64,000 nt of DNA from the IMG/VR virus record IMGVR_UViG_3300022866_000322, positions 62,001-126,000 of that record; one strand, 5' to 3'. The translations under genes and the position numbers were made by a program. Each line of letters opens with the position of its first letter. Position 1 is the stretch's first letter. Below, piece by piece: positions 50,203 to 64,000 of the stretch. A model generated the notes under the pieces. It did no database searches. It worked only from the letters and a program-made list of their open reading frames with translations, and had not been told where the DNA came from.

Positions 50203-52866
50203 ATGAGTTACATAGACGCATTATTTGATAGAAAAGCAGATCGCATACATGTCGTGGAGCGTGTCAATGGGGAACGTGTATACAAAGAGTTTCCTGCTAA
50301 CTATGTGTTCTACTATGATGATCCCAAGGGCAAGTTCCGTACAGTGTATGGTAGCCCTGTGAATAGGTTCAGTACACGCAACGGCAAAGAGTTTCAAAAA
50401 GAAATGCGTGTGAACGGCGGAAAGAGATTATGGGAATCGGATATTAATCCAGTGTTCCGCTGTTTAGAAGAAAACTACCTGGGACAACAATCACCTAAAC
50501 TGCAAACATGCTTCTTTGATATTGAGGTCGACTTTGACCCTGAACGTGGATTCAGTCCACCTAGTGATCCGTTCAATGCAGTAACTGCAATTACTGTGTA
50601 CAACGACTGGATGGACAAGTTGATCACACTGGCTATTCCTCCCAAAGGACTTAGCTGGGAAAGTGCAGAAGAACTATGCAAAGACTTCGAAAACTGTTTC
50701 TTATTCGAACGTGAAGAAGAACTGTTGGGCACATTCTTAGATTTAATTGAAGATGCTGACATACTGTCGGGTTGGAACAGTGAAGGTTTTGATATTCCTT
50801 ACTTGGTCATGCGCATAAAGCGTGTACTTAGCAACGATGACAATAGACGTTGGTGCCTATGGGGGCAACTACCCAAGCAACGCACATTTGAACGTTTTGG
50901 TGCAGAGAATCTAACATTTGATTTAATAGGCAGAGTGCATATGGACTATATGCAACTGTATCGCAAATACACATACGAAGAACGTCACAGTTATTCACTA
51001 GATGCAATTGGTGAACACGAACTAGGTGAACGTAAAACACAATACGAAGGCTCACTTGATCAGTTGTATAACAAAGACTTCAAGACCTTTATTGAGTACA
51101 ATCGACAGGATACCGCGTTGCTAGGCAAGATGGACAAGAAGTTACGTTTTTTAGATCTTGCAAACGAACTAGCGCATGATAATACCGTACTGCTACAAAC
51201 AACAATGGGTGCAGTGGCAGTTACAGAGCAGGCTATTATTAATGAGGCACATCAGCGTGGTATGGTTGTACCTAATAGGAAAGGAAAAGAAGAACATGGA
51301 GAAACGCAAGCGGCAGGTGCCTATGTTGCTCATCCCAAAAAAGGGATGCACGACTGGATCGGAGCAATCGACATCAACTCACTCTATCCCAGTGCTATTA
51401 GGGCCCTCAACATGGCGCAAGAAAGCATCATCGGACAACTCAGACCGATAATGACAGACAGGTACATCAAGGAAAAACAGGACGCTGGAAAGAGTTTTGC
51501 TGATAGTTGGGAAAACATGTTCGGTAGCCTTGAGTATCAAGCGGTAATGAATGGAGAGCCTGGCACAGAGATTACTGTAGACTGGGAAGCAGATGGTAGC
51601 AGTGATATAATGAGTGCCGCTGACATTTGGAGACTGATATTTGACAGTAACAAACCTTGGATGATCAGTGCTAACGGTACTATATTCAGTTATGAAAAAA
51701 AGGCTATTGTACCAGGATTGTTAGAACGTTGGTATGCCGAACGTAAAGAACTACAAGCAAAGAAGCGTGACGCTGAGTCCGATGATGATATTGCATTCTG
51801 GGATAAACGACAGTTGGTTAAGAAGATTAACTTGAACAGTTTGTATGGCGCTATTCTTAATCCAGGTTGTAGATTCTTTGACAAACGTATTGGACAAAGT
51901 ACTACACTATCCGGTCGTATCATTGCCAAGCACATGGATGCGTTTGTTAACGAAGCCATAACAGGTGTATATGATCACACTGGTGATGCAGTTGTGTATG
52001 GTGATACTGATTCTTGTTACTTCACTGCATGGCCCGCTATTAAAGATGATGTCGAAAGCGGTAAAATGGAATGGAACAAAGACATTGCTACACAAGTGTA
52101 TGATAGCATCTCAGACCAACTTAATGAAAGTTTTCCATTGTTCATGGAAAAAGCCTGTCACTGCCCACGTGAAAATGGCGCATTGATCAAAGGTGGTAGA
52201 GAGATTACTGCAACTAAAGGCTTGTACATTAAGAAGAAGCGTTATGCGGCACTGATATATGACATGGAAGGTACTAGACTCGACGGCGGCGGCAAACCAG
52301 GCAAAGTTAAAGCCATGGGACTTGACTTGAAGCGAAGTGATACTCCGCCGGTTGTACAGAATTTCCTAAGTGATATACTACTTGGTGTACTAACAGGATC
52401 AACCAAAGAACAGATATATGATAAGGTTCGCGACTTTAAAATTGCATTCCAACAGCGTCCAGCATGGGAAAAAGGTACTCCCAAGCGTGTAAACAATCTA
52501 ACCAAGTACACTGCCGCTGAAAAAGCGCAAGGCAAAGCAAACATGCCTGGCCATGTAAGAGCCGCAATGAACTGGAACTATCTCAAACGCATGCATGGTG
52601 ACAACTACAGTCAAAACATTGTTGATGGTATGAAAACTATTGTGTGCAAACTTAAAGAGAACCCAATGGGTTACAAGAGTGTAGGGTATCCAACAGATGT
52701 TTCACATATCCCACAGTGGTTTAAGGACTTGCCATTTGATGATGCACTAATGGAGGCAACTATTGTGGATCAGAAAGTAGAGAACCTATTAAGTGTACTT
52801 AAATGGGATATTCCTGCACATACCAACATCAAAACAACATTTGACGACTTGTTCAGCTTCGAATAA
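50203..52866 (+). CDS. Family B DNA polymerase (T4 gp43-like)
   Basis: Exo motifs FDIEVD, WNSEGFDIPY, YNRQD; polymerase motifs DINSLYPS, KINLNSLYG, YGDTDS, KKKRY. Confidence 0.96.
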   Translation: MSYIDALFDRKADRIHVVERVNGERVYKEFPANYVFYYDDPKGKFRTVYGSPVNRFSTRNGKEFQKEMRVNGGKRLWESDINPVFRCLEENYLGQQSPKLQTCFFDIEVDFDPERGFSPPSDPFNAVTAITVYNDWMDKLITLAIPPKGLSWESAEELCKDFENCFLFEREEELLGTFLDLIEDADILSGWNSEGFDIPYLVMRIKRVLSNDDNRRWCLWGQLPKQRTFERFGAENLTFDLIGRVHMDYMQLYRKYTYEERHSYSLDAIGEHELGERKTQYEGSLDQLYNKDFKTFIEYNRQDTALLGKMDKKLRFLDLANELAHDNTVLLQTTMGAVAVTEQAIINEAHQRGMVVPNRKGKEEHGETQAAGAYVAHPKKGMHDWIGAIDINSLYPSAIRALNMAQESIIGQLRPIMTDRYIKEKQDAGKSFADSWENMFGSLEYQAVMNGEPGTEITVDWEADGSSDIMSAADIWRLIFDSNKPWMISANGTIFSYEKKAIVPGLLERWYAERKELQAKKRDAESDDDIAFWDKRQLVKKINLNSLYGAILNPGCRFFDKRIGQSTTLSGRIIAKHMDAFVNEAITGVYDHTGDAVVYGDTDSCYFTAWPAIKDDVESGKMEWNKDIATQVYDSISDQLNESFPLFMEKACHCPRENGALIKGGREITATKGLYIKKKRYAALIYDMEGTRLDGGGKPGKVKAMGLDLKRSDTPPVVQNFLSDILLGVLTGSTKEQIYDKVRDFKIAFQQRPAWEKGTPKRVNNLTKYTAAEKAQGKANMPGHVRAAMNWNYLKRMHGDNYSQNIVDGMKTIVCKLKENPMGYKSVGYPTDVSHIPQWFKDLPFDDALMEATIVDQKVENLLSVLKWDIPAHTNIKTTFDDLFSFE

Positions 52867-52897: not shown

Positions 52898-53881
52898 ATG
52901 AACCTCGTAGATCTTGTAAACACCAAAAACTCCCTCAGAAGTGGGCCTGACCTAGCTCCATTATCTGCCGAGCTTGATAAAATTACCAAGCACTACCAAG
53001 ATATTATTCTAGGTGTTGATCCTAGATTTACCGGATCTGTAAACATTTCTATAGATCATTATCAAACAATTAAAGATCAATTAGCCTTACACCAACCCAA
53101 GATTGAGCAGACAATTGCGGATATTGATGCAGAAATACTGAAACAAAGTCAAAAGTTTTTTACAGAAAGTTATGCACTTGAGCGTGAGCTAAAGAGTGAC
53201 TTTGATTCTTACGGAATGTTAACGCAAAATCTTAGAACAATGCGACACTGGCGGAATATTAGATTAGACCAAACTGGTAGTCCAGATATGCACATGCTAG
53301 GAGTAATTCGAAAACATGTAGAACATAGATATCCTGTACTAGAGATAGGTTGCCGCGACGGGGACTGGACTAAATTTTTAGTTGCTGGTGATCCATTATA
53401 CATATCTGATTACACAGAAGAGTTTATGCATAATGCAGTGCACCAGTTTACGAAACAGTACATTCCTAGAGTCAGGCAGTACCAAATAAAAGACAACAAC
53501 ATAAACGATCTGCCAGAAAATCAATTTGGTTTTGTTCTTAGTTACAACTTCTTTAATTATCTTGCATTTGATACTATCAAACAATGGATGCGCAAAGCGC
53601 ACACTTGGTTAAGGCCAGGTGGTATTATAATGTTTACCTACAATAATGCAGATCATGGTTACGGTGCAGCCATGGCTGAAAGTAGCGTACAAAGTTATTG
53701 TCCAATGAGCTTACTTGTGCCCATGTGCGAAAGTATTGGTTTACAGTATCACGATCATAGAGATTACGTAAACACACCATTTACTCCAATGAGCTGGATA
53801 CAATTCAAAAAGCCAGGAGAGCTGTCCACAGTAAAAGTAGCACAGGCGTTAGGGCAAATAAAATTATACTCTGAGACTTGA
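52898..53881 (+). CDS. Class I SAM methyltransferase with helical N-terminus
   Basis: VLEIGCRDG, FGFVLSYNFF, LRPGGIIMF. Confidence 0.8.
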   Translation: MNLVDLVNTKNSLRSGPDLAPLSAELDKITKHYQDIILGVDPRFTGSVNISIDHYQTIKDQLALHQPKIEQTIADIDAEILKQSQKFFTESYALERELKSDFDSYGMLTQNLRTMRHWRNIRLDQTGSPDMHMLGVIRKHVEHRYPVLEIGCRDGDWTKFLVAGDPLYISDYTEEFMHNAVHQFTKQYIPRVRQYQIKDNNINDLPENQFGFVLSYNFFNYLAFDTIKQWMRKAHTWLRPGGIIMFTYNNADHGYGAAMAESSVQSYCPMSLLVPMCESIGLQYHDHRDYVNTPFTPMSWIQFKKPGELSTVKVAQALGQIKLYSET

Positions 53882-55329: not shown

Positions 55330-56838
55330 ATGTCCAAGGTAAAAACATCAACGAAAGATTGCATGGATCAAGATAACCTAACAGCAAAACAAAACGACTA
55401 CGCAATATTCTTGCCTGCCATTTCTGGCTTCTACGCAACATTTATAGGCAAACAACGTGTTAACAACGATTATGTTGATGTTAACCGCATGCCTGCGGCT
55501 ATTCAAGACATGGAACAAATGAATTGGTTAAATGATCAAAAAGGATTGTTTCCATACAAGTGGAGTTTGTATTCAGGTGGACATGCTAACTTAGATCTAG
55601 CAAAAGACGATCCCAAAGAGAATATGGTACGTGAACGTGATCCAAATACTCTAATGTTAGGTGACTCTGGTGGTTTCCAAATTGGTAAAGGGCTTTGGGA
55701 AGGAGACTGGAAGGCTAACTCTGGCTGTCCTAAAGCACAAAAGAAAAGAGGGCTTGTACTTAATTGGTTAGACAATACTGCTGATTACGGAATGGGGCTC
55801 GATATCCCGACTTGGGTTTTTAAAAATAAAGAGGCTAGTGACGCATGTCAAATAAAAACAATACAACAAGCAGTAGACGCAACCAAATTCAACAACGAGT
55901 ACTTCATCAAGCATCGCAAAGGCGTCAGCAATGGCGGAACCCGCTTCTTAAACGTTCTGCAAGGAAGTGATCACACCAGTGCAGACGAGTGGTATGAAGA
56001 GATGAAAGGATTCTGTGACCCCAATAAGTATCCAGACAGACACTTTGACGGCTGGGGAATGGGTGGACAAAACATGTGTGACGTACACTTGGTGTTAAAG
56101 CGGTTAGTTGCACTGCGTCACGATAACCTATTACAACAAGGTAAACATGATTGGATGCACTTCTTGGGAACAAGCAAACTTGAATGGGCGGTGTTATTAA
56201 CTACCATACAACGTGCAGTTCGCAAATATGTAAACCCGAACTTTACAATAAGTTTCGATTGTGCATCACCTTTTTTAGCAACAGCAAATGGTCAAGTATA
56301 TCATGAGATATCGTTACCACACGACGGCAAGTGGAGTTATAGAATGAGTCCAATAGCTGATGATAGGAAATACTCATCAGACACAAGGCCTTACGGTAGT
56401 GCCGCACTACAAGATGGCCTTATTGGTACTTTCGAAGAAAGCCCTATGAGTTCGCGTACACAAATGAAAGATGTTTGTGTTTACGCACCCGGTGATCTGA
56501 ATAAGATAGGTAAAGAAGGCAAGACCAGTTGGGATAGTTTCAGTTATGCACTGTTAATGGGCCACAATGTTTGGACACATATCGAAAGTGTGCAACGTGC
56601 AAACAGAGAGTTTGATGCAGGTAACTACCCACGTATGATGCGCAACAATACTGGTAGAGTATTGTTTAAAGATGTAGTAGACCGCATATTTGCAACACCT
56701 GACCGTGCTGAAGCAGACGAGATAATCCAAAGCCATAACAAATACTGGATGGAAATTATTGGAACCAGAGGCAACACAGGAAAGAAAACTGTTTCGCCAC
56801 AAGCACAATATGAAAACTTATTTGAGGAAGCCGCATAA
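55330..56838 (+). CDS. dpdA: TGT-fold transglycosylase, DpdA-like (7-deazaguanine insertion into DNA)
   Basis: LGDSGGFQ, LDIP, VLQG, HFLG, SFDCASP (catalytic Asp); no CxCxxC zinc motif of tRNA TGTs; clustered with FolE and a QueD-like gene. Confidence 0.75.
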   Translation: MSKVKTSTKDCMDQDNLTAKQNDYAIFLPAISGFYATFIGKQRVNNDYVDVNRMPAAIQDMEQMNWLNDQKGLFPYKWSLYSGGHANLDLAKDDPKENMVRERDPNTLMLGDSGGFQIGKGLWEGDWKANSGCPKAQKKRGLVLNWLDNTADYGMGLDIPTWVFKNKEASDACQIKTIQQAVDATKFNNEYFIKHRKGVSNGGTRFLNVLQGSDHTSADEWYEEMKGFCDPNKYPDRHFDGWGMGGQNMCDVHLVLKRLVALRHDNLLQQGKHDWMHFLGTSKLEWAVLLTTIQRAVRKYVNPNFTISFDCASPFLATANGQVYHEISLPHDGKWSYRMSPIADDRKYSSDTRPYGSAALQDGLIGTFEESPMSSRTQMKDVCVYAPGDLNKIGKEGKTSWDSFSYALLMGHNVWTHIESVQRANREFDAGNYPRMMRNNTGRVLFKDVVDRIFATPDRAEADEIIQSHNKYWMEIIGTRGNTGKKTVSPQAQYENLFEEAA

Positions 56839-57065
56839 TGTCATACCAGCTTAGACTAAACGATTTAGAAGAAGCGCACGAAACCCTAAACCAACAGGTT
56901 AATAACCTACAAGGGAATGTGCATTGGAATGATTATCAATTAAACCAGCTTAAAAAAGAAAAACTTAGAATCAAAGACGAAATATATCGTATTCAAAAAT
57001 TAGACCAAGGACCAGACCCAGAGGACACAGATTATTATGATAGCACGGAAACAGACGACTACTGA
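56838..57065 (+). CDS. Small coiled-coil protein (DUF465/YdcH-like)
   Basis: LEEAHETL...LKKEKLRIKDEI. Confidence 0.65.
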   Translation: MSYQLRLNDLEEAHETLNQQVNNLQGNVHWNDYQLNQLKKEKLRIKDEIYRIQKLDQGPDPEDTDYYDSTETDDY

Positions 57066-57273
57066 TAACCCAATACTAAAAGATGCATGTGAACTGTTTT
57101 GGATAGTTAAAGGGCACATACCATCATGCATGTACTACGACGATACTGTGGAAGATACATATAATTCTTATTTTGATAGAGTATGGCGCTGGGATCCAAA
57201 TGAAGTATATCTTAGACGTCAAGGTTTTGACCAAGCATACAAACAATTTTTAACAAACTGGCCGGAGGCATAA
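57037..57273 (+). CDS. Hypothetical protein
   Basis: Coupled ORF. Confidence 0.6.
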   Translation: MIARKQTTTDNPILKDACELFWIVKGHIPSCMYYDDTVEDTYNSYFDRVWRWDPNEVYLRRQGFDQAYKQFLTNWPEA

Positions 57274-57788
57274 TGAATCGAGAAGGACACGAACAAGCCA
57301 CAATGTTCCTGGGAACAGAAGTAGAACACTCAGCAACCTATGGAATGAAAACATTATTTGTTGTTGGGCTTGTACCCGCAGAACAGGTATTACGAGAAGC
57401 ACTCAGACATGACGTAGAACATATCTACTTGGGTGCTAATCAAAGTTTTGGAACCTGGGACGGCATATTGTCAGAATGGGACGTTTTAATTACCAGTTGC
57501 ATTGACGAAGGTTATTGGGTAACACTGGACTATGATGTTAACGATCACAACGAGGTAATGTCACTGGATCTCCAGGATTGTAATCGTTTTATTAGTATGA
57601 TAAGTGTTAAACTGCCCAACATACGTAAATTAAATTACAATGCTACATTAAAGATTGACGATAGTGATTACGAAGCAACAAATCCTGGTGTATGGTGCCA
57701 CAGCGTACACAGCTTACAAAAAAGAAAACTATTCACAGATTGGTCTAAATATACCAACGACCAAATAATCGAGGAGGAAGTAAAATGA
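57273..57788 (+). CDS. Hypothetical protein within the deazaguanine locus
   Basis: FLGTEVEH...KTLFVVG...HIYLGANQSF...GVWCH. Confidence 0.75.
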   Translation: MNREGHEQATMFLGTEVEHSATYGMKTLFVVGLVPAEQVLREALRHDVEHIYLGANQSFGTWDGILSEWDVLITSCIDEGYWVTLDYDVNDHNEVMSLDLQDCNRFISMISVKLPNIRKLNYNATLKIDDSDYEATNPGVWCHSVHSLQKRKLFTDWSKYTNDQIIEEEVK

Positions 57789-57991
57789 AAAAGCAAATCA
57801 TTGACAATCTCAGAGCAAAGTACCAAAATCAAATTGCTATTGCAAGGACAAACGTTGAGTTGTTTATAGCAAGCCCACAGGGCGTTGCTGAACACATCGA
57901 CTTTTCCGAAACTGTAGAAAAAGAATTGGAAAAAATTGCACATGCAAATGATATGCTAGAAGCATTAGAGTACGTAAGCTCTGATGTTTGA
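57785..57991 (+). CDS. Small helical hypothetical protein
   Basis: GAGG SD; GVAEHIDF. Confidence 0.7.
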   Translation: MKKQIIDNLRAKYQNQIAIARTNVELFIASPQGVAEHIDFSETVEKELEKIAHANDMLEALEYVSSDV

Positions 57992-58016
57992 CATTTCAAT
58001 TAATTAGTTGTACAAT
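57988..58016 (+). promoter_or_regulatory. sigma70 promoter, probably giving a leaderless mRNA
   Basis: TTGACA, 17 nt, TACAAT; ATG 58023 lies 7 nt after the -10 element. Confidence 0.75.
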
Positions 58017-58022
58017 AACTAT

Positions 58023-58469
58023 ATGAACCAATCACAAAGAAATACCGTAGATCAAATCATGCATCATGCACGTAGGGACATTTGGGTTACTTTCCAGAAA
58101 GAAGGTGTTCACATGTATCCAGGGGCTGACACAGATCCTAAACTTGCAACAGGTGGGTGGGACGATGTTAGTTTCTTGGGCGTGCCACATAGACACATAT
58201 TCCACTTTAGGGTAGGAATTGAAGTGTTCCACAACGACAGAGACATTGAATTTATTCAATTCAAGCGTTGGATGCAACGACTTTATGACGTCGAAGGCGT
58301 ACTTGAATTAAATTATAAGTCTTGCGAAATGATTGCAGATGACTTGTACTTACAGATTGCAGACCGTTACCCGGATCGTGTGGTTACAATTGAAGTAAGC
58401 GAAGATGGTGAGAATGGCTGCCAAATAACTTACAATACATCCCAACAAGCCCAAACAAAAATATATTAA
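58023..58469 (+). CDS. QueD-like T-fold protein (DpdL-type motif)
   Basis: LGVPHRHIF (58176-58202; LxxxHRHxF in place of the QueD CxxxHGH); HNDRDIEF; SCEMIA; EVSEDGENG. Confidence 0.7.
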   Translation: MNQSQRNTVDQIMHHARRDIWVTFQKEGVHMYPGADTDPKLATGGWDDVSFLGVPHRHIFHFRVGIEVFHNDRDIEFIQFKRWMQRLYDVEGVLELNYKSCEMIADDLYLQIADRYPDRVVTIEVSEDGENGCQITYNTSQQAQTKIY

Positions 58470-60035
58470 ATGTTATTAGATCTTCTCCGGAAGGTATATG
58501 ATTTTGATATGACCGTAGCGTTAGAAACCATTGCGACTATGCCTTCTTCTTTTTTATACAAAAAGATAAGTCCATTTATTAAACAACAATATCCTAACAA
58601 CTACAAGTTCATATTTTTGAACAACAGTGATGTCAACCAAGAAGTATTACTGCACGTTATACAAACAATAGAATTGTGTAAGATTCCTAATGCATTTGTA
58701 TTGGTCATTACTAATCAAACCAGAGTGCATGATTTTTTTGCAAGTAATAACATTGAAGTTAAAAAAAATAATATTCCTGACGAACTAGAAACAGGGAATT
58801 ACACACCAACTTTTAATGTCCAAGAGAAACTTTGTCCTTATCCGTGGGCTGGCATTCATGTAGAGCCACAAGGTTACGTTAAGCCGTGCTGTGATTTTTA
58901 TGGTTCATACTTAAAGCATAACGGTACTCTATTGGATGCTAGTAAAGATTCGTTTGAATACATGCAAAATTCAAGCGACATGAAATTGATAAGGGAACAG
59001 TTTAGACAAGGCATAAAGCCAGAAGGATGTAAGAAGAACTGTTTAGATGCGCCAGAGGGCAAATCTACCAGGTTTACGCATTCAAAGTACAAGCTGAACA
59101 ATGTATACGGAGAAATAGACTGGGAAGGCGAAGGTGAGATGAAGTTTCTTAACGGACACTTCAGTAACTTGTGCAACCTCGGTTGTGTGATTTGTGAACC
59201 GCGATCTAGTTCGATACTGTCTGTAGAGGAACTTAAAGATTCACAGTACGCCAACATTAAACAAGATCCACGATATAAAAAGTTACAAATCCATCTAAAC
59301 ACATTAGACGAAAACAGCACTATATGGAAAGAACTGGATAAAAATATTTCAACTATACGTAACTTTGAAATATTGGGTGGCGAACCACTGCTAAATAAAA
59401 ATATCTTACGAGTCATCGAAAGATTAATTGATTCAGGGCATAGTAAACATTGTGTTTTTCAAATTATAACCAATGGTACACAATTCCCTGATATATGCAA
59501 CCAGTTACATCACTTTAAAGAGGTATTCATACACATAAGTGTAGACAACACAAACGAGCGATTTGAATATGAACGCTATTTGGGAAAATGGGATAAGTGG
59601 GTAAGTAACGTAAGCCAATTTGATAATTTAACAAAACAACACAATCATATTAAATTACATTTTGCAATAGCAGTAAGTATTTTAAATGCATTGTACTTGC
59701 CAGAACTGTTATCGCATATTTCAAGATACAACTACCAAACATTTTACTTTGGTGATGTACATAAACCGTCTCAGTTATCGTTGAACAACTTGACATTAGA
59801 AGCAAAAGATGTTCTAATAGAAAGACTATCAATGTTTACTGATCAATATCCAAAACTAAATTTTGTGCTGAACTTACTAAAAAATTCTAAACAAGTTGAT
59901 GGAACAGAATTTTGTAACTTTATACAAAACAAAGATAAATTACGAAATTTAAACTTTATGGATACGCATGAGGAAATAGGAAATCTTATGGGATATTCAT
60001 CTTTTAACATTCAAGGAGAAACAAATGGCCGCTAG
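58470..60035 (+). CDS. Radical SAM protein with N-terminal extension and twitch-like domain
   Basis: CPYPW...VKPCC...GCKKNC, CNLGCVIC, LGGEPLL, ITNGT. Confidence 0.85.
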   Translation: MLLDLLRKVYDFDMTVALETIATMPSSFLYKKISPFIKQQYPNNYKFIFLNNSDVNQEVLLHVIQTIELCKIPNAFVLVITNQTRVHDFFASNNIEVKKNNIPDELETGNYTPTFNVQEKLCPYPWAGIHVEPQGYVKPCCDFYGSYLKHNGTLLDASKDSFEYMQNSSDMKLIREQFRQGIKPEGCKKNCLDAPEGKSTRFTHSKYKLNNVYGEIDWEGEGEMKFLNGHFSNLCNLGCVICEPRSSSILSVEELKDSQYANIKQDPRYKKLQIHLNTLDENSTIWKELDKNISTIRNFEILGGEPLLNKNILRVIERLIDSGHSKHCVFQIITNGTQFPDICNQLHHFKEVFIHISVDNTNERFEYERYLGKWDKWVSNVSQFDNLTKQHNHIKLHFAIAVSILNALYLPELLSHISRYNYQTFYFGDVHKPSQLSLNNLTLEAKDVLIERLSMFTDQYPKLNFVLNLLKNSKQVDGTEFCNFIQNKDKLRNLNFMDTHEEIGNLMGYSSFNIQGETNGR

Positions 60036-60252
60036 TTGGCTAAAAAAATATCTCACAATGAAGCCAGAGGTTAATCAAATTTATGATGACCTTGACGCTT
60101 ACCGTGAGTTCTGTGTTAAGCAAGGATACAACTTTGACGAACGACACCTATATCATGAGAAAACGCCATGGGGAGAATATCAACGTGTGCTAAATGGTAA
60201 ACGACCCAAGGATGCTTGGTACTTTGTAAAGAAACCTTACGTAAGTCGATGA
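60025..60252 (+). CDS. Hypothetical protein
   Basis: AGGAG SD. Confidence 0.7.
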   Translation: MAASWLKKYLTMKPEVNQIYDDLDAYREFCVKQGYNFDERHLYHEKTPWGEYQRVLNGKRPKDAWYFVKKPYVSR

Positions 60253-61325
60253 TATATCTAGTAGACTTAGAAGCAGTAGACACACGTTATACTAAACAGT
60301 GGAAGACTCATGTCCCAGAACTCCTACAAAGAGAACTGGACGAGCCTGTTACTGTTATAAGTGGCGGTGAGACACCACAAGCAACAACGCCAGGTGCGTT
60401 CTTAAACTTTGGTGGCACTAATGTGTACAAGTCTAAACAACTAGAACAAATAGGTGAACTATTTTGTTCTGGCAAAGTTAAAGACGGTGACTACTTCCTT
60501 TATACTGATGCTTGGAACCCTACTGTTATACAGTTAAAGTATATGGCAGAGTTGTTAGGTGTCAACATAAAGATAGGTGGGCTTTGGCATGCTGGTAGTT
60601 ATGATCCAGAAGACTTTTTAGGAAGACTCATTGGTGACAAGCCTTGGGTCAGACACGCTGAAAAAAGCATGTACGAAGTGTTTGATCATAACTTCTTTGC
60701 TAGTGTATTTCATATTAAAATGTTTTACAGTGTACTCCATCATCCTTGGCAAATTACCTGGGCTGATGGAATGTTCAGTGATGGAAAGATAACTCGCACT
60801 GGTTGGCCTATGGAGTATATGGCAGATACTCTTGCGCCACATAACAACATACCCAAGCGGGACTTGATACTTTTCCCACACAGGATTGCTCCAGAAAAAC
60901 AACCTGAGATATTCCGAGACTTAAAGGCATCATTGCCACAGTACGAGTTTGTGATGTGTCAAGAGCAAGAACTTACAAAAAACGAATATCATAATCTGTT
61001 AGGTGAAGCTAAAATTGTTTTTAGTGCTAACTTACAAGAAACACTTGGAATAAGTTGGTACGAAGGAGCATTAGTGGGTGCTATTCCCATGGTGCCTGAC
61101 AGGTTAAGTTATAGTGAGATGGCATTGCCTGAGTTTAAGTATCCAAGTGAATGGACTCAAAACTTTGAAAATTACAGAGAACATAAACAGCAAGTCTGTG
61201 ATACTATTGTAGACTATATAGAAAATTACGACAAGTACACTAACCTAGTTAATAAACAAGCACTTAAACTTAAAGACGAGTACTTTGGTGCTGGTAAATT
61301 AATTTCAACAATCAAGAACAGATGA
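60249..61325 (+). CDS. GT-B glycosyltransferase
   Basis: FPHRIAPEKQP, QETLGISWYEGALVGAIPMVP (ExFG...EA-type motif). Start moved to ATG 60249. Confidence 0.8.
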   Translation: MIYLVDLEAVDTRYTKQWKTHVPELLQRELDEPVTVISGGETPQATTPGAFLNFGGTNVYKSKQLEQIGELFCSGKVKDGDYFLYTDAWNPTVIQLKYMAELLGVNIKIGGLWHAGSYDPEDFLGRLIGDKPWVRHAEKSMYEVFDHNFFASVFHIKMFYSVLHHPWQITWADGMFSDGKITRTGWPMEYMADTLAPHNNIPKRDLILFPHRIAPEKQPEIFRDLKASLPQYEFVMCQEQELTKNEYHNLLGEAKIVFSANLQETLGISWYEGALVGAIPMVPDRLSYSEMALPEFKYPSEWTQNFENYREHKQQVCDTIVDYIENYDKYTNLVNKQALKLKDEYFGAGKLISTIKNR

Positions 61326-62302
61326 AGGTAGTCATTACAGGTGGGTGCGGATACATTGGTAGCCATGTTGCTAGAGCATTTACGCAACATGGCGCCGAAG
61401 TGTTTGTTATTGATAAAGAACGCAGACAACACACACTAAAAGGCATCAAGCACTTTAGACATGATGACTTTGCTAGTCCTGGATCAATAGATCTAATTAA
61501 AGATTACGAACCAGACTACATTGTGCATTGTGCAGGTACCAGTCTGGTTGGTCCAAGTGTTACTGATCCCGGTGAGTACTACGATAACAACATTGCCAAA
61601 ACAATACACATGCTGAATAGTCTACGTGACTTGCCTGTTAAGCCTACCATAATGTTTAGCTCAAGTGCAAGTGTTTATGGCGAGCCCGACACTGTTCCTA
61701 TTCCAGAAACAGCAAGGTTAGATCCAATAAGTCCGTATGGTAATACAAAGTACCTAACAGAAGTTATTCTGAAAGATTATGCTAGAGCGTACGGTATTGC
61801 TAGTATTTGTTTTAGATATTTTAATGCCGCTGGTGCTGAGCCTGACGCATTTGACCTTGGTCAAGAACTAGGTGCTACGCACATCGTTGCTAGGGTGCTA
61901 GAGGCCAGTATGTTGAATCAACAGTTTACACTCAACGGCGATGACTATCCAACACCAGACGGCAGTTGTATTAGGGATTATGTGCATGTACAAGACATTG
62001 CACAAGCACACGTTTGTGGTGCTGAATACTTGGAGACAGCAAGACCAGATCCTGCTTGTCATATTTTTAACCTTGGTACCAATACAGGTATTAGCAATTG
62101 GGAAATTGTAAACTTCGTAAAAGAAAAATACGGTTTACCAAAGTTTACTGTTAGCGAACGAAGAGCCGGAGATCCTGCTCAATTGATTGCTGATGCTACT
62201 CGTGCAAAAGAAATACTTAACTGGGTTCCTGAATACAGTAACTTGGAAGACGTTGTATCTACTGCACATCATTGGTATCTAAACAGCCTTACAAAACACT
62301 AA
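61322..62302 (+). CDS. galE: UDP-glucose 4-epimerase
   Basis: VITGGCGYIGSH, FSSSASVYG, YGNTK, FRYFNAAGA, GSCIRDYVHVQDIA, RRAGDP. Confidence 0.92.
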   Translation: MKVVITGGCGYIGSHVARAFTQHGAEVFVIDKERRQHTLKGIKHFRHDDFASPGSIDLIKDYEPDYIVHCAGTSLVGPSVTDPGEYYDNNIAKTIHMLNSLRDLPVKPTIMFSSSASVYGEPDTVPIPETARLDPISPYGNTKYLTEVILKDYARAYGIASICFRYFNAAGAEPDAFDLGQELGATHIVARVLEASMLNQQFTLNGDDYPTPDGSCIRDYVHVQDIAQAHVCGAEYLETARPDPACHIFNLGTNTGISNWEIVNFVKEKYGLPKFTVSERRAGDPAQLIADATRAKEILNWVPEYSNLEDVVSTAHHWYLNSLTKH

Positions 62303-62880
62303 TGTTTGACAAAATATTTGAATTTGAACAAGCACTTGCAGAATACACAGGTGCTCCGTATGCAGTAATGACCGATTGTTGTACACATGCACTGGAACTT
62401 TGCTTTAGATTAAAACAGGTTAAACGTGTACAGTTTACCTGTTACACATACCTGAGCATACCCATGTTGATGCACAAACTTGGTATCGAATATGAGTTGG
62501 TTCCAGAGAAATGGACAGGCGAGTATCGATTTTATGGCACGGATATTTGGGATAGCGCACGTAAAGTAGAGCGTGGCATGTATCAAGCAGGACAAATGCA
62601 GTGTTTAAGTTTTGGTTACGGAAAGCCTTTACATATAGGACACGGTGGTGCTATACTAGTAGATGATGTAGAAACTTATGATCAGCTATCGCAAATGAGA
62701 TATGACGGTCGGGACTTGAACATTAGTCCATGGGAGCAACAGAGATCATTTAGGGTAGGGTATCATTACAAACCAGCAATTGAAGATGCTGTGCTAGGAT
62801 TAGAAAAATTATCAGTACTGGAAGAACAGTCTAAATATCATCAATATCCAGACCTAAGAGAGATTGAAATACATGATTAG
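62302..62880 (+). CDS. Short DegT/DnrJ-family PLP aminotransferase
   Basis: FEQALAEYTGAPYAV, CCTHALEL, WDSAR, SFGYGKPL (PLP Lys), GHGGAIL; only 192 aa. Confidence 0.8.
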   Translation: MFDKIFEFEQALAEYTGAPYAVMTDCCTHALELCFRLKQVKRVQFTCYTYLSIPMLMHKLGIEYELVPEKWTGEYRFYGTDIWDSARKVERGMYQAGQMQCLSFGYGKPLHIGHGGAILVDDVETYDQLSQMRYDGRDLNISPWEQQRSFRVGYHYKPAIEDAVLGLEKLSVLEEQSKYHQYPDLREIEIHD

Positions 62881-63556
62881 CAAAACTATTAAAGACAGAA
62901 TTGAACAAGCAGGCAAACGCTACTGGGCAGGCGATAACATCAGTGAGCATATTCAAGAAGGAGATCTGGATCAGCTGGTGGATGAACTTACTGGTAAGTT
63001 TTCGGGTGTGTTGGATAGTTTGGTTATTGACCAAGCAAATGATCCCAACAGCAAAGGCACAGCAAAGCGTCTTGCTAAGATGTATATACATGAACTTATG
63101 GCAGGGCGGTATGATCCAATGCCTCCGGCAACAGCATTCCCAAATGATTCAGATGATCGTTATGACGGTATGCTAGTAGTACGTAGCGAACTAAAGAGCA
63201 TGTGTTCACATCACCATCAGCCTGTTACAGGCATAGCCTATATTGGTATTATTGCCGCAGACAAACTTATTGGCCTAAGCAAGTATACCCGTATTGCACA
63301 GTGGTGTGCTAGACGTGGTACGTTGCAAGAAGAACTTGCAAACGACATTGCACGTGAGATTGGTAACGCAACCGACGCAAAGCATTTGGGTGTTTACATC
63401 CAAGCAACACACGGGTGTTGTGAAAATAGAGGCATTATGGCACATAGTAGTCTTACGCAAACTACTGTATTACGTGGATCTTTCAAAGATGATCCGGGCA
63501 CAAAGAAAGAGTTCTTTGACAACATCAAACTGCAACAGGAGTTTTCGCCAAGATAA
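62873..63556 (+). CDS. folE: GTP cyclohydrolase I
   Basis: SMCSHHHQP, IGLSKYTR, QEELA, ATHGCCENRG, TTVLRGSF. Confidence 0.95.
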   Translation: MISKTIKDRIEQAGKRYWAGDNISEHIQEGDLDQLVDELTGKFSGVLDSLVIDQANDPNSKGTAKRLAKMYIHELMAGRYDPMPPATAFPNDSDDRYDGMLVVRSELKSMCSHHHQPVTGIAYIGIIAADKLIGLSKYTRIAQWCARRGTLQEELANDIAREIGNATDAKHLGVYIQATHGCCENRGIMAHSSLTQTTVLRGSFKDDPGTKKEFFDNIKLQQEFSPR

Positions 63557-63561
63557 AATGA

Positions 63562-63590
63562 TTGACAAAATCATTAACTGAGTATATAAT
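63562..63590 (+). promoter_or_regulatory. Consensus sigma70 promoter
   Basis: TTGACA, 17 nt, TATAAT. Confidence 0.85.
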
Positions 63591-63623
63591 AAGTACTTCT
63601 TTTCAACACTTAATGGTGTGATC

Positions 63624-64000
63624 ATGAAGTACTTTTTTGTTTGTGCGTTGTCTTTATCTATTGTAGCCTGTGGTGGCGGAGGCGGGGGCGGAGGTCCAAA
63701 CGTTAGACCCACAATATCCAGCCCAACACTTTCGGCTTCTAGCAACACCAATTTTGTTGCACCAGTAAAAGCAGGCAGTTACAATCTATTTGTTAGTGGT
63801 AGCACAACTGCCCCTGTGCAGGACATATTTGTACAAGACCTAAACAATGACAACAAAGAAGAAATTGTCATTGCTGGACGTATGAGCCAGAGTGATACTA
63901 ACCTTGTAACTGCACCCGATCAAACAGCTAAAAATGCCGCCTGGCAGAACAGTCAAATTAGTGTATTTGGTTGGAACGGTAGCGACCAACTTGAAAACCA
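63624..64000 (+). CDS. 3'-truncated lipoprotein with FG-GAP/VCBS-like repeat
   Basis: MKYFFVCALSLSIVAC-GGGGGGG lipobox and Gly linker; DLNNDNKEEIVIAG; frame open to the window end; absent from the ORF track. Confidence 0.75.
   Translation, partial: MKYFFVCALSLSIVACGGGGGGGGPNVRPTISSPTLSASSNTNFVAPVKAGSYNLFVSGSTTAPVQDIFVQDLNNDNKEEIVIAGRMSQSDTNLVTAPDQTAKNAAWQNSQISVFGWNGSDQLEN

Follow-up and report, generated by a model that had tools for sequence, protein, structure and literature searches.

Previously described DpdL-type systems and 7-deazaguanine glycosylation

The closest described systems are the DpdL-type phage pathways published in 2023 (PMC10516641), which comprise FolE, QueD, QueE, DpdL (motif LxxxHRHxF) and a distant TGT-like DpdA, with no QueC, placed next to the polymerase. 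This pathway stops at 7-carboxy-7-deazaguanine (CDG), which DpdL is proposed to decarboxylate, although this activity has never been shown. The only member with measured DNA is phiST, which carries plain dDG. Expression of dpdL plus dpdA from ACP17 or phiST gave no dDG in E. coli, and the authors suggested that other enzymes may be needed (PMC10516641). The word "glycosyl" does not occur in the main text of that paper.

Glycosylation of related substrates is known from several other systems. T4 alpha/beta-glucosyltransferases and other phage DNA glycosyltransferases acting on 5hmC or 5-hydroxycytosine are GT-B-type enzymes encoded beside a base-modification pathway, and they decorate a modified base in phage DNA to evade nucleases, acting on a hydroxyl of a modified pyrimidine. 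In eukaryotic tRNA, QTMAN and QTGAL produce mannosyl- and galactosyl-queuosine, with the cyclopentenediol of queuosine as the acceptor. In the huimycin/dapiramicin pathways, HuiG glycosylates a 7-deazapurine base from UDP-GlcNAc (bioRxiv 10.64898/2026.04.15.718813), while the tubercidin pathway uses CDG without QueC, plus a phosphoribosyltransferase (PRTase) and a decarboxylase. These last pathways belong to actinomycete secondary-metabolite clusters without any transglycosylase, and the decarboxylase there is UbiD-type, not T-fold.

Gene content of the locus

We examined a window of 64,000 nucleotides from a 221 kb IMG/VR contig of an uncultivated salt-lake phage, in which an earlier note, made from sequence alone, had pointed to a 7-deazaguanine DNA-modification locus interleaved with sugar enzymes. 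The observation itself is confirmed, as all eight genes named are present between 55330 and 63556 on the + strand and mostly overlap. The following features were identified.

55330..56838 (+): DpdA-like transglycosylase (502 aa), predicted TGT fold, of a divergent long clade
56838..57065 (+): DUF465 small coiled-coil protein (PF04325, 47 bits), present in L103, a marine (Tara) relative
57037..57273 (+): small ORF of 78 aa, unknown; a 79-aa gene sits at the same position in L103
57273..57788 (+): orf171, conserved protein of unknown function that travels with DpdA and the glycosyltransferase
57785..57991 (+): small conserved protein (phrog_1811, E 2.7e-17), found in 41 of 80 relatives
57988..58016 (+): promoter-like site (TTGACA-17-TACAAT) in the only gap inside the cluster, 11 of 12 consensus matches
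58008..58469 (+): DpdL (T-fold, QueD-like; proposed CDG decarboxylase), the true start probably being the ATG at 58023
58470..60035 (+): radical-SAM (rSAM) enzyme with an N-terminal twitch/SPASM domain plus a 118-aa unknown N-terminal extension
60025..60252 (+): orf75, small conserved protein, found directly upstream of the glycosyltransferase in 43 of 80 relatives
60249..61325 (+): GT4-like (GT-B, EX7E) glycosyltransferase (GT), a core member of the dpdL module
61322..62302 (+): GalE, UDP-hexose 4-epimerase
62302..62880 (+): short DegT-like PLP protein (about 192-202 aa), lacking the C-terminal domain
62873..63556 (+): FolE, GTP cyclohydrolase I
63562..63590 (+): perfect sigma-70-like promoter-like site marking the end of the unit, 12 of 12 consensus matches, followed by the lipoprotein gene

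The DpdA-like protein returned no Pfam, PHROG, NCBIfam or PDB sequence hit. It nevertheless carries DSGGFQ at residues 112-117, D112, D158 and D310 are invariant in 20 homologues, and the top 50 PDB hits of its AlphaFold model (pLDDT 85.5) are all tRNA-guanine transglycosylases (E about 1e-8, TM 0.40-0.54). Homologues in PA5oct and Vibrio phage 2.275.O sit beside que genes. The protein belongs to a longer clade (about 490-540 aa), which is linked to DpdA3 of ACP17 only through weak profile similarity and one bridging sequence. Since the closest solved folds act on tRNA, the enzyme could in principle carry out a queuosine-type change of the anticodon. We consider this very unlikely, because the gene is embedded in the DNA replication module next to PolB and the clamp, DpdA families in general share the TGT fold, and the DNA of the relative PA5oct resists restriction at G-containing sites. 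No CxCxxC zinc motif is evident in the alignment, although this was judged by eye and is weak evidence.

orf171 is found in 73 of 80 related loci, always between DpdA and DpdL, and has a homologue in ACP17 just upstream of DpdA3; its AlphaFold model (pLDDT 85.8) shows a predicted alpha/beta fold with no PDB match. DpdL carries LGVPHRHIF, which fits LxxxHRHxF, was recovered by HMM search, and is 66% identical to its counterpart in Phosso, 58% to PA5oct, 54% to ACP17 and 33% to phiST. The rSAM enzyme matches NF033640 (250 bits against a cut-off of 170), has a CNLGCVIC motif, and has a 71% identical homologue at the same position in L103. GalE matches TIGR01179 (303 bits against a cut-off of 262) and PF01370 (160 bits), and strain variants in this gene fall at third codon positions. 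The DegT-like protein, a short form of 202 aa, matches PF01041 with 57.7 bits over profile positions 162-242 only, but keeps the PLP lysine, its SFGYGK motif aligning with SFHPRK of aminotransferase 9bgp; homologues of about 200 aa occur in the sequences labelled L007, L008 and L103, and in phage glycan clusters. FolE matches PF01227 (128.8 bits) and is 64% identical to FolE of Phosso.

Start and stop codons overlap or abut from DpdL to FolE, forming one gap-free gene run bounded by the two best promoter-like sites, which rest on consensus matches only. Independent assemblies from four runs support the gene order. The earlier note also stated that no QueC, QueE or canonical QueD is in the window. 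For QueD and QueE this is true only because the window ends there, as both lie 5.2-7.0 kb further on the source contig, where QueD is 53% identical to QueD of ACP17. No QueC, QueF or GAT was found, and this is the exact pattern published for DpdL phages (PMC10516641).

Linkage of the glycosyltransferase to dpdL

In order to determine whether the sugar enzymes are linked to the dpd genes in relatives, which the note had set as a test of its reading, we compared the locus with 80 related viral contigs. The GT lies next to dpdL in 79 of 80, and the module sits in the replication region after PolB and the sliding clamp in 56-65 of 80. The same association is seen in 9 of 11 other lineages, namely PA5oct, Phosso, ACP17, X1 and BCSR5, and 4 of 6 sampled distant relatives of the GT (27-34% identity) with other replication modules; one distant relative, L100, has no DpdL within 7 kb. 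Conversely, DpdL occurs without the GT in phiST, RHph_I1_18, Ahp1 and Bakedbeans. This asymmetry suggests that the transferase probably acts after DpdL.

The closest cultured relatives are the Pseudomonas jumbo phage PA5oct (Wroclawvirus) and the Sinorhizobium phage Phosso (PolB 46-50%, DpdA-like 29-34%, GT 43-48% and DpdL 58-66% identical). They share the order of PolB, clamp, DpdA, GT and DpdL, followed in PA5oct by QueE, but the identity of their modified G has not been reported. They lack this rSAM enzyme, a full GalE and the short DegT, PA5oct having only a 172-aa SDR-like fragment. In ACP17 the GT is found between DpdA3 and DpdL, whereas phiST lacks both the GT and orf171.

The GT has no Pfam hit, but carries an invariant E264-x7-E272 motif, and its Atlas neighbours are GT4/GT-B. 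It has no close solved relative and no specific sequence similarity to any solved GT, so that its acceptor cannot be read from sequence, and there is no detectable sequence similarity to the phage DNA glycosyltransferases acting on modified pyrimidines. A QTMAN-family cluster appears among the structural neighbours of the GT family (TM 0.74-0.77), but the scores are no better than for generic GT4 enzymes such as glycogen synthase, and this should be interpreted as a resemblance only.

GalE, the rSAM enzyme and the short DegT appear to be lineage-specific additions. GalE and this rSAM are absent from all 80 closest GT loci, and the short DegT is present in only 2 of them, although the whole order including these three genes is kept in L103 at about 70% identity. 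Homologues of the short DegT lie in large phage glycan clusters unrelated to dpd, and homologues of the rSAM sit beside Mre11/Rad50-like genes. These observations, together with the plain dDG of phiST, leave possible, though in our view unlikely, that the DNA carries plain dDG (or dCDG) and that the sugar enzymes glycosylate something else, such as a virion protein, the host envelope or a small molecule, merely sharing an early or middle transcription unit with the dpd genes. However, this does not explain why this GT family remains attached to dpdL across lineages with different polymerases and gene orders, nor why the GT almost never appears without dpdL while the reverse is common.

A predicted pathway to a sugar-bearing deazaguanine

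We propose that this is a DpdL-type module that swaps guanine in the phage's own DNA for a 7-deazaguanine, probably to escape restriction. In this view, FolE with QueD and QueE would convert GTP to CDG, DpdL would remove the carboxyl group to give 7-deazaguanine, and the DpdA-like enzyme would exchange this base for G in DNA. The GT would then add a sugar from a nucleotide-sugar to the deazaguanine, either on DNA, as T4 glucosyltransferases do on 5hmC, or on the free base before insertion, as HuiG does. GalE, the short DegT and the rSAM enzyme would probably tailor the sugar donor in this lineage. Relatives carry other sugar-type tailoring genes in the same slots, namely GFO/IDH/MocA, 2OG oxygenase, class-III aminotransferase and HIT. 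What the analysis establishes is the identity of the genes, the predicted fold, the synteny and the co-occurrence; every chemical step, the DNA target, the acceptor atom and the sugar are inferred from assembled contigs, without chemical or read-level evidence on the DNA. Unsubstituted 7-deazaguanine has no obvious hydroxyl to accept a sugar, and phiST makes dDG with DpdL and no GT. We regard the proposal as about as likely as not. The interpretation in the earlier note, of either dDG-type DNA or a deazaguanine further decorated with a sugar or amino-sugar, is partly supported: the DpdL-type locus and the functional tie of the GT to it are supported, but not that any sugar ends up on the base, or that GalE, the short DegT and the rSAM feed this transferase. 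The linkage of the GT is the new element relative to the published pathway, and suggests a sugar-bearing modified guanine that has not been chemically described.

The module also holds a purine-type PRTase in 69 of 80 relatives and a HIT protein in 47, which points to small-molecule or nucleotide chemistry; the PRTase, with the GT and DpdL, parallels the 7-deazapurine natural product pathways. It is conceivable, but we think unlikely, that the GT acts on a soluble intermediate, glycosylating the free 7-deazapurine base, as HuiG does, or a pterin, as pteridine glycosyltransferases do. The glycoside would then be a pathway intermediate, a carrier form or a separate metabolite, and DpdL may have a reaction other than decarboxylation; DpdL has an invariant cysteine (KSCEM) in the family alignment that is not discussed in the literature. 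Although nothing here separates this reading from glycosylation on DNA, a DpdA is always present, and DNA is its known target. A nucleotide-level route is very unlikely, in which the PRTase turns CDG or 7-deazaguanine into a nucleotide, as TubE does for tubercidin, which is reduced, phosphorylated and incorporated by the adjacent PolB, leaving the TGT-like protein a minor or different role. All characterised phage 7-deazaguanine systems are post-replicative through DpdA (PMC10516641), no kinase or reductase partner was seen in the locus, and the PRTase is equally well explained as salvage of the guanine that DpdA releases. Relatives carry other sugar-type tailoring genes in the same slots, namely GFO/IDH/MocA, 2OG oxygenase, class-III aminotransferase and HIT.

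Gene content and order of the deazaguanine locus

The earlier note described a run of 7-deazaguanine genes interleaved with sugar enzymes at window positions 55330-63556, and this observation is confirmed, as the region is an unbroken run of + strand genes in the following order.

55330-56838 (+), 502-aa DpdA-like protein with a predicted TGT fold
56838-57065 (+), DUF465 protein
(+), 78-aa ORF
57273-57788 (+), orf171, a conserved protein
(+), phrog_1811 protein
58008-58469 (+), DpdL
58470-60035 (+), 521-aa radical-SAM (rSAM) enzyme
(+), orf75
60249-61325 (+), GT4-like glycosyltransferase (GT)
61322-62302 (+), GalE
62302-62880 (+), short DegT-like protein
62873-63556 (+), FolE

Start and stop codons overlap or abut throughout, and the only gap, located before DpdL, holds a sigma-70-like site with 11 of 12 consensus matches. 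A second site (TTGACA-17-TATAAT, 12 of 12) directly follows FolE. Although these are consensus matches only, DpdL through FolE looks like one unit. The site after FolE precedes an 812-aa predicted lipoprotein with FG-GAP repeats (window 63562-64000 and L005:914-3352, where L005 is a locus on the source contig), whose signal peptide ends in IVAC and is followed by a Gly run. Upstream of the DpdA-like gene lie PolB (50203-52866), a 327-aa class-I SAM methyltransferase (52898-53881) that is shared only with the nearest relatives (loci L007, L008 and the Tara Oceans relative L103), and a sliding-clamp homologue.

A nucleotide search of the region against GenBank phages returned no match. The stretch is present in at least 18 salt-lake metagenome runs at 98-99% of sampled words, contigs from four of these runs reproduce the gene order, and one of them spans 57600-62104. 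Co-existing strain variants in these runs are concentrated in GalE and the DegT-like gene (61345-61357 and 62373-62544), where the Logan contigs fragment. The variants fall mainly on third codon positions (9 of 11 in one DegT variant block), which argues for coding genes under selection and against an assembly chimera.

The note had also stated that QueE and a canonical QueD are absent from the window, but they are not absent from the genome. On the source contig (IMGVR_UViG_3300022866_000322, 221,342 bp), which was hit by a 42-mer from the window end and with which the overlap is 100% identical, FolE is followed by the FG-GAP lipoprotein, an unknown gene, a purine-type phosphoribosyltransferase (PRTase; L005:4153-4689; best matches are xanthine and hypoxanthine-guanine PRTases), another unknown gene, QueD (L005:5307-5807; 53% identical to ACP17 QueD), a 114-aa cupin (L005:5804-6148, about 5.5 kb past the window end) and QueE (L005:6148-6999). 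No QueC, QueF or amidotransferase (GAT) was found in the 64-kb window or in the 8.7 kb downstream, which are the only parts of the contig that were read. This is the pattern of FolE, QueD, QueE, DpdL and DpdA without QueC that Cui et al. 2023 tie to dDG.

Sequence and predicted fold of the encoded proteins

Searches of Pfam, PHROG, NCBIfam and PDB, by sequence or profile, were mostly empty for the DpdA-like protein, the GT, orf171 and DpdL, and fold prediction was needed for the DpdA-like protein and orf171. The DpdA-like protein had no Pfam, PHROG or NCBIfam hit at E<=0.01-0.1, neither to the TGT family model (PF01702) nor to a DpdA model, and no PDB sequence match even as a 16-sequence profile. 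It does carry GDSGGFQ, and D112 (of DSGGFQ), D158 and D310 are invariant in 20 homologues. Its AlphaFold model (pLDDT 85.5, pTM 0.87) matches only tRNA-guanine transglycosylases among the top 50 PDB hits (E 7e-9 to 1e-7, TM 0.40-0.54). Homologues occur in PA5oct-like Pseudomonas jumbo phages, in Sinorhizobium phage Phosso, and in Vibrio phage 2.275.O, where the neighbors are QueF, a YhhQ-type transporter, QueC, an amidotransferase and FolE. Its relation to the published DpdA3 is weak: hhalign against ACP17 DpdA3 gives a probability of 8.5% (E 0.004) with the motifs in register, a 402-aa protein from locus L091 hits both the window protein (6e-14) and ACP17 DpdA3 (9e-5), and the family HMM does not reach ACP17, X1 or BCSR5. 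We therefore refer to this protein as DpdA-like, of a divergent long clade.

DpdL has LGVPHRHIF, corresponding to the LxxxHRHxF signature that replaces CxxxHGH of QueD, with H61 and H63 invariant and R62 nearly so across 17 members. In tblastn it is 54% identical to the ACP17 DpdL (E 2e-35) and 33% to that of phiST (E 4e-9), and the family HMM gives E 5e-59 and 1e-18, respectively. No PF01242 hit was obtained at E<=0.01 and no PDB profile hit, and the published T-fold assignment rests on HHpred for phiST. As published, DpdL lacks the QueD catalytic cysteine. All 17 aligned members do have an invariant Ser-Cys-Glu in a KSCEM motif and an EDGENG motif further downstream, which we did not find discussed. 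In Vibrio phage Bakedbeans (gp176, L110:5239-6390) the DpdL homologue is the C-terminal third of a 383-aa annotated protein, suggesting a fusion with an unknown N-terminal domain.

The GT has no Pfam hit, but it has an EX7E motif in the C-terminal domain (E264-TLGISWY-E272) that is invariant in 18 sequences. Its neighbors in the ESM Atlas are GT4/GT-B proteins that carry PF00534, a model of a family member, rather than of the window protein, superposes on GT4 enzymes at TM 0.70-0.82, and a relative gave a faint PF00534 hit. The best PDB profile hit is WlaC, at only E 0.09, and the idea of a pterin glycosyltransferase found no specific sequence support in PDB.

For orf171, Foldseek against PDB and BFVD gave no informative match beyond its ACP17 homologue, and Atlas hints at TIM-barrel hydrolases were below the reliable range. 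Protein CGPG_00066 of phiST was rejected as an orf171 homologue (hhalign E 0.5), and a 143-aa protein of phage X1 is only a weak candidate (E 0.17).

The rSAM enzyme passes the cut-off of the N-terminal-twitch family NF033640 (250.3 bits against 170, profile positions 2-396 of 398) and contains CNLGCVIC. It has an N-terminal extension of about 118 aa ahead of the twitch domain (58470-58823) that matches no family. GalE passes the equivalog cut-off of TIGR01179 (303.3 bits against 262.3). The DegT-like protein does not have the full two-domain fold-type-I architecture of DegT/DnrJ/EryC1 sugar aminotransferases (about 360-390 aa), as it has only 202 aa and matches profile positions 162-242 plus a short N-terminal stretch. 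It keeps the PLP lysine (SFGYGK), but the C-terminal domain and about 50 residues of the large domain are absent. Homologues of about 200 aa exist in other phages, so this is a family and not a broken gene.

Association of the glycosyltransferase with DpdL

A search of IMG/VR with a GT alignment confirmed at least 590 loci. An exhaustive protein search found 1173 clusters at 50% identity, 254 of them at E<=1e-30. In the 80 best loci (L007-L086, 65-85% identity), we used tblastn with the window's proteins.

Occurrence of module proteins in the 80 best GT loci
Protein: loci out of 80
DpdL: 79 (the exception starts 164 nt before the GT)
orf171: 73
DpdA-like: 70
PRTase: 69
FolE: 58
QueE: 48

The gene order is constant: PolB, clamp, DpdA, orf171, DpdL, (orf75), GT, PRT, FolE, QueE. 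These loci belong to one phage clade (PolB about 60% identical) and count as little more than one observation. We also examined independent lineages. The T4-like phage ACP17 has the order QueD, FolE, orf171 homologue, DpdA3, GT, DpdL, QueE, and Xanthomonas phage X1 has FolE ... GT, TGT, DpdL, QueE, while further cases are Burkholderia phage BCSR5, PA5oct and Phosso. Of six distant GT clusters (27-34% identity), looked up by exact protein, four have DpdL adjacent, one is on a contig that ends at the GT, and one has no DpdL within 7 kb. Conversely, a GT-family HMM finds nothing within 6-7 kb of DpdL in phiST, RHph_I1_18, Ahp1 or Bakedbeans. The GT thus almost always comes with DpdL, but DpdL does not need the GT, and the simplest reading is that the GT uses something that the DpdL pathway makes.

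The interpretation given in the earlier note, that the DNA is either of dDG type or carries a deazaguanine further decorated with a sugar or amino-sugar, is partly supported. The locus is a member of the known DpdL-type deazaguanine system and the GT link is real at the genomic level, whereas the hypermodified-base reading is plausible and testable but chemically unproven. What our analysis establishes is the gene content, its order and the co-occurrence of the GT with DpdL, while the presence of a modified base in virion DNA and the reactions of DpdL, the DpdA-like enzyme, the GT and the PRTase are inferred. A search for nanopore or raw reads that could show a G-specific signal found only assembled contigs of Illumina-type runs. 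The steps from GTP to CDG (FolE, QueD, QueE) rest on the established enzymology of those families, and the conversion of CDG to 7-deazaguanine by DpdL is a published proposal that has not been validated. The weakly matching cupin between QueD and QueE (oxalate-decarboxylase bicupin family, E 4.5e-5), with homologues in 15 of the 80 relatives at varying positions, could be an alternative candidate for the CDG decarboxylase. Base exchange into DNA by the DpdA-like enzyme is inferred from its predicted fold, its position in the replication module and the restriction-resistant DNA of PA5oct.

Glycosylation is our inference from co-occurrence. Plain 7-deazaguanine has no hydroxyl, so the sugar would have to go on N2 (as in huimycin and dapiramicin), on O6 or on a ring carbon, or alternatively DpdL or a partner makes a different handle. 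For HuiG, the literature we found shows only that it glycosylates the base. The PRTase is a near-core member of the module and may salvage the guanine released by DpdA, recycling it to GMP, or may act on CDG as TubE does in tubercidin synthesis. We found no report of a glycosylated deazaguanine in DNA or of this GT-DpdL link in the open-access and bioRxiv literature searched, which leaves out subscription journals, and the main text of Cui et al. does not contain the word "glycosyl". The link is apparently undescribed.

7-deazaguanine DNA modifications are a major way for phages to evade restriction, and the DpdL branch is their least understood part, since the activity of DpdL is unproven and reconstitution in E. 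coli failed. A virus-specific GT that is a near-constant companion of dpdL gives a concrete candidate for the missing enzyme and predicts a new class of DNA base, a glycosylated deazapurine. Such a base would bear on phage-therapy host range, on defense systems that sense modified G, and on sequencing and enzymology tools. The prediction can readily be tested because cultured phages with the same core exist, one of which (PA5oct) already has an unexplained modified G.

Lineage-specific sugar genes and other variable components

GalE and this rSAM enzyme appear in none of the 80 loci, where the weak SDR and rSAM hits at 22-29% identity are other genes, and short DegT appears in two of them. The Tara Oceans relative L103, however, keeps the full order from DpdA to the cupin, with rSAM (71% identical), GalE and short DegT in place, so that the set is maintained in a sublineage. 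A general association of the rSAM with dpd genes was rejected, as homologues at 36-41% identity sit next to Mre11/Rad50-like genes, and more distant homologues of short DegT also sit in unrelated contexts.

It remains a tentative possibility, and one we consider less likely than not, that most DpdL-bearing phages, including cultured PA5oct, ACP17, Phosso and X1, do not stop at 2'-deoxy-7-deazaguanosine but carry a glycosylated 7-deazaguanine in their DNA, made by this dedicated virus-specific GT4-like transferase, possibly with orf171 as a partner. If so, this would be the first sugar-bearing purine analogue known in any DNA, and in this salt-lake/marine lineage the sugar would be further diversified (epimerised, aminated or radical-SAM-modified) by GalE, short DegT and the twitch rSAM enzyme.

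Other relatives fill the variable slots between DpdA and QueE with different families. Among loci L007-L086 these are a HIT-domain protein (47 loci), two unknown families (50 loci each), a two-domain 2OG-Fe(II) oxygenase (20), a GFO/IDH/MocA oxidoreductase (8), an alcohol dehydrogenase (ADH; 8), an HhH-GPD-like protein (8), and single cases of class-III aminotransferase, SAM synthetase, methyltransferase and Bax1-I. This fits a variable tailoring layer around a fixed core, but it does not prove one. In a distant lineage (L095:935-1966 and L096; GT 34% identical) a conventional rSAM/SPASM enzyme lies between DpdL and the GT, the position that the permuted N-terminal-twitch rSAM occupies in the window. 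We examined whether the L095 enzyme belongs to the same family, and only the twitch domains resemble each other.

The FG-GAP lipoprotein gene also changes position, as in relatives L007 and L008 it sits between DpdA and DpdL. In PA5oct (L001:2605-7831) PolB is split by a Hef-like homing endonuclease gene, whereas PolB in the window is a single 887-aa ORF.
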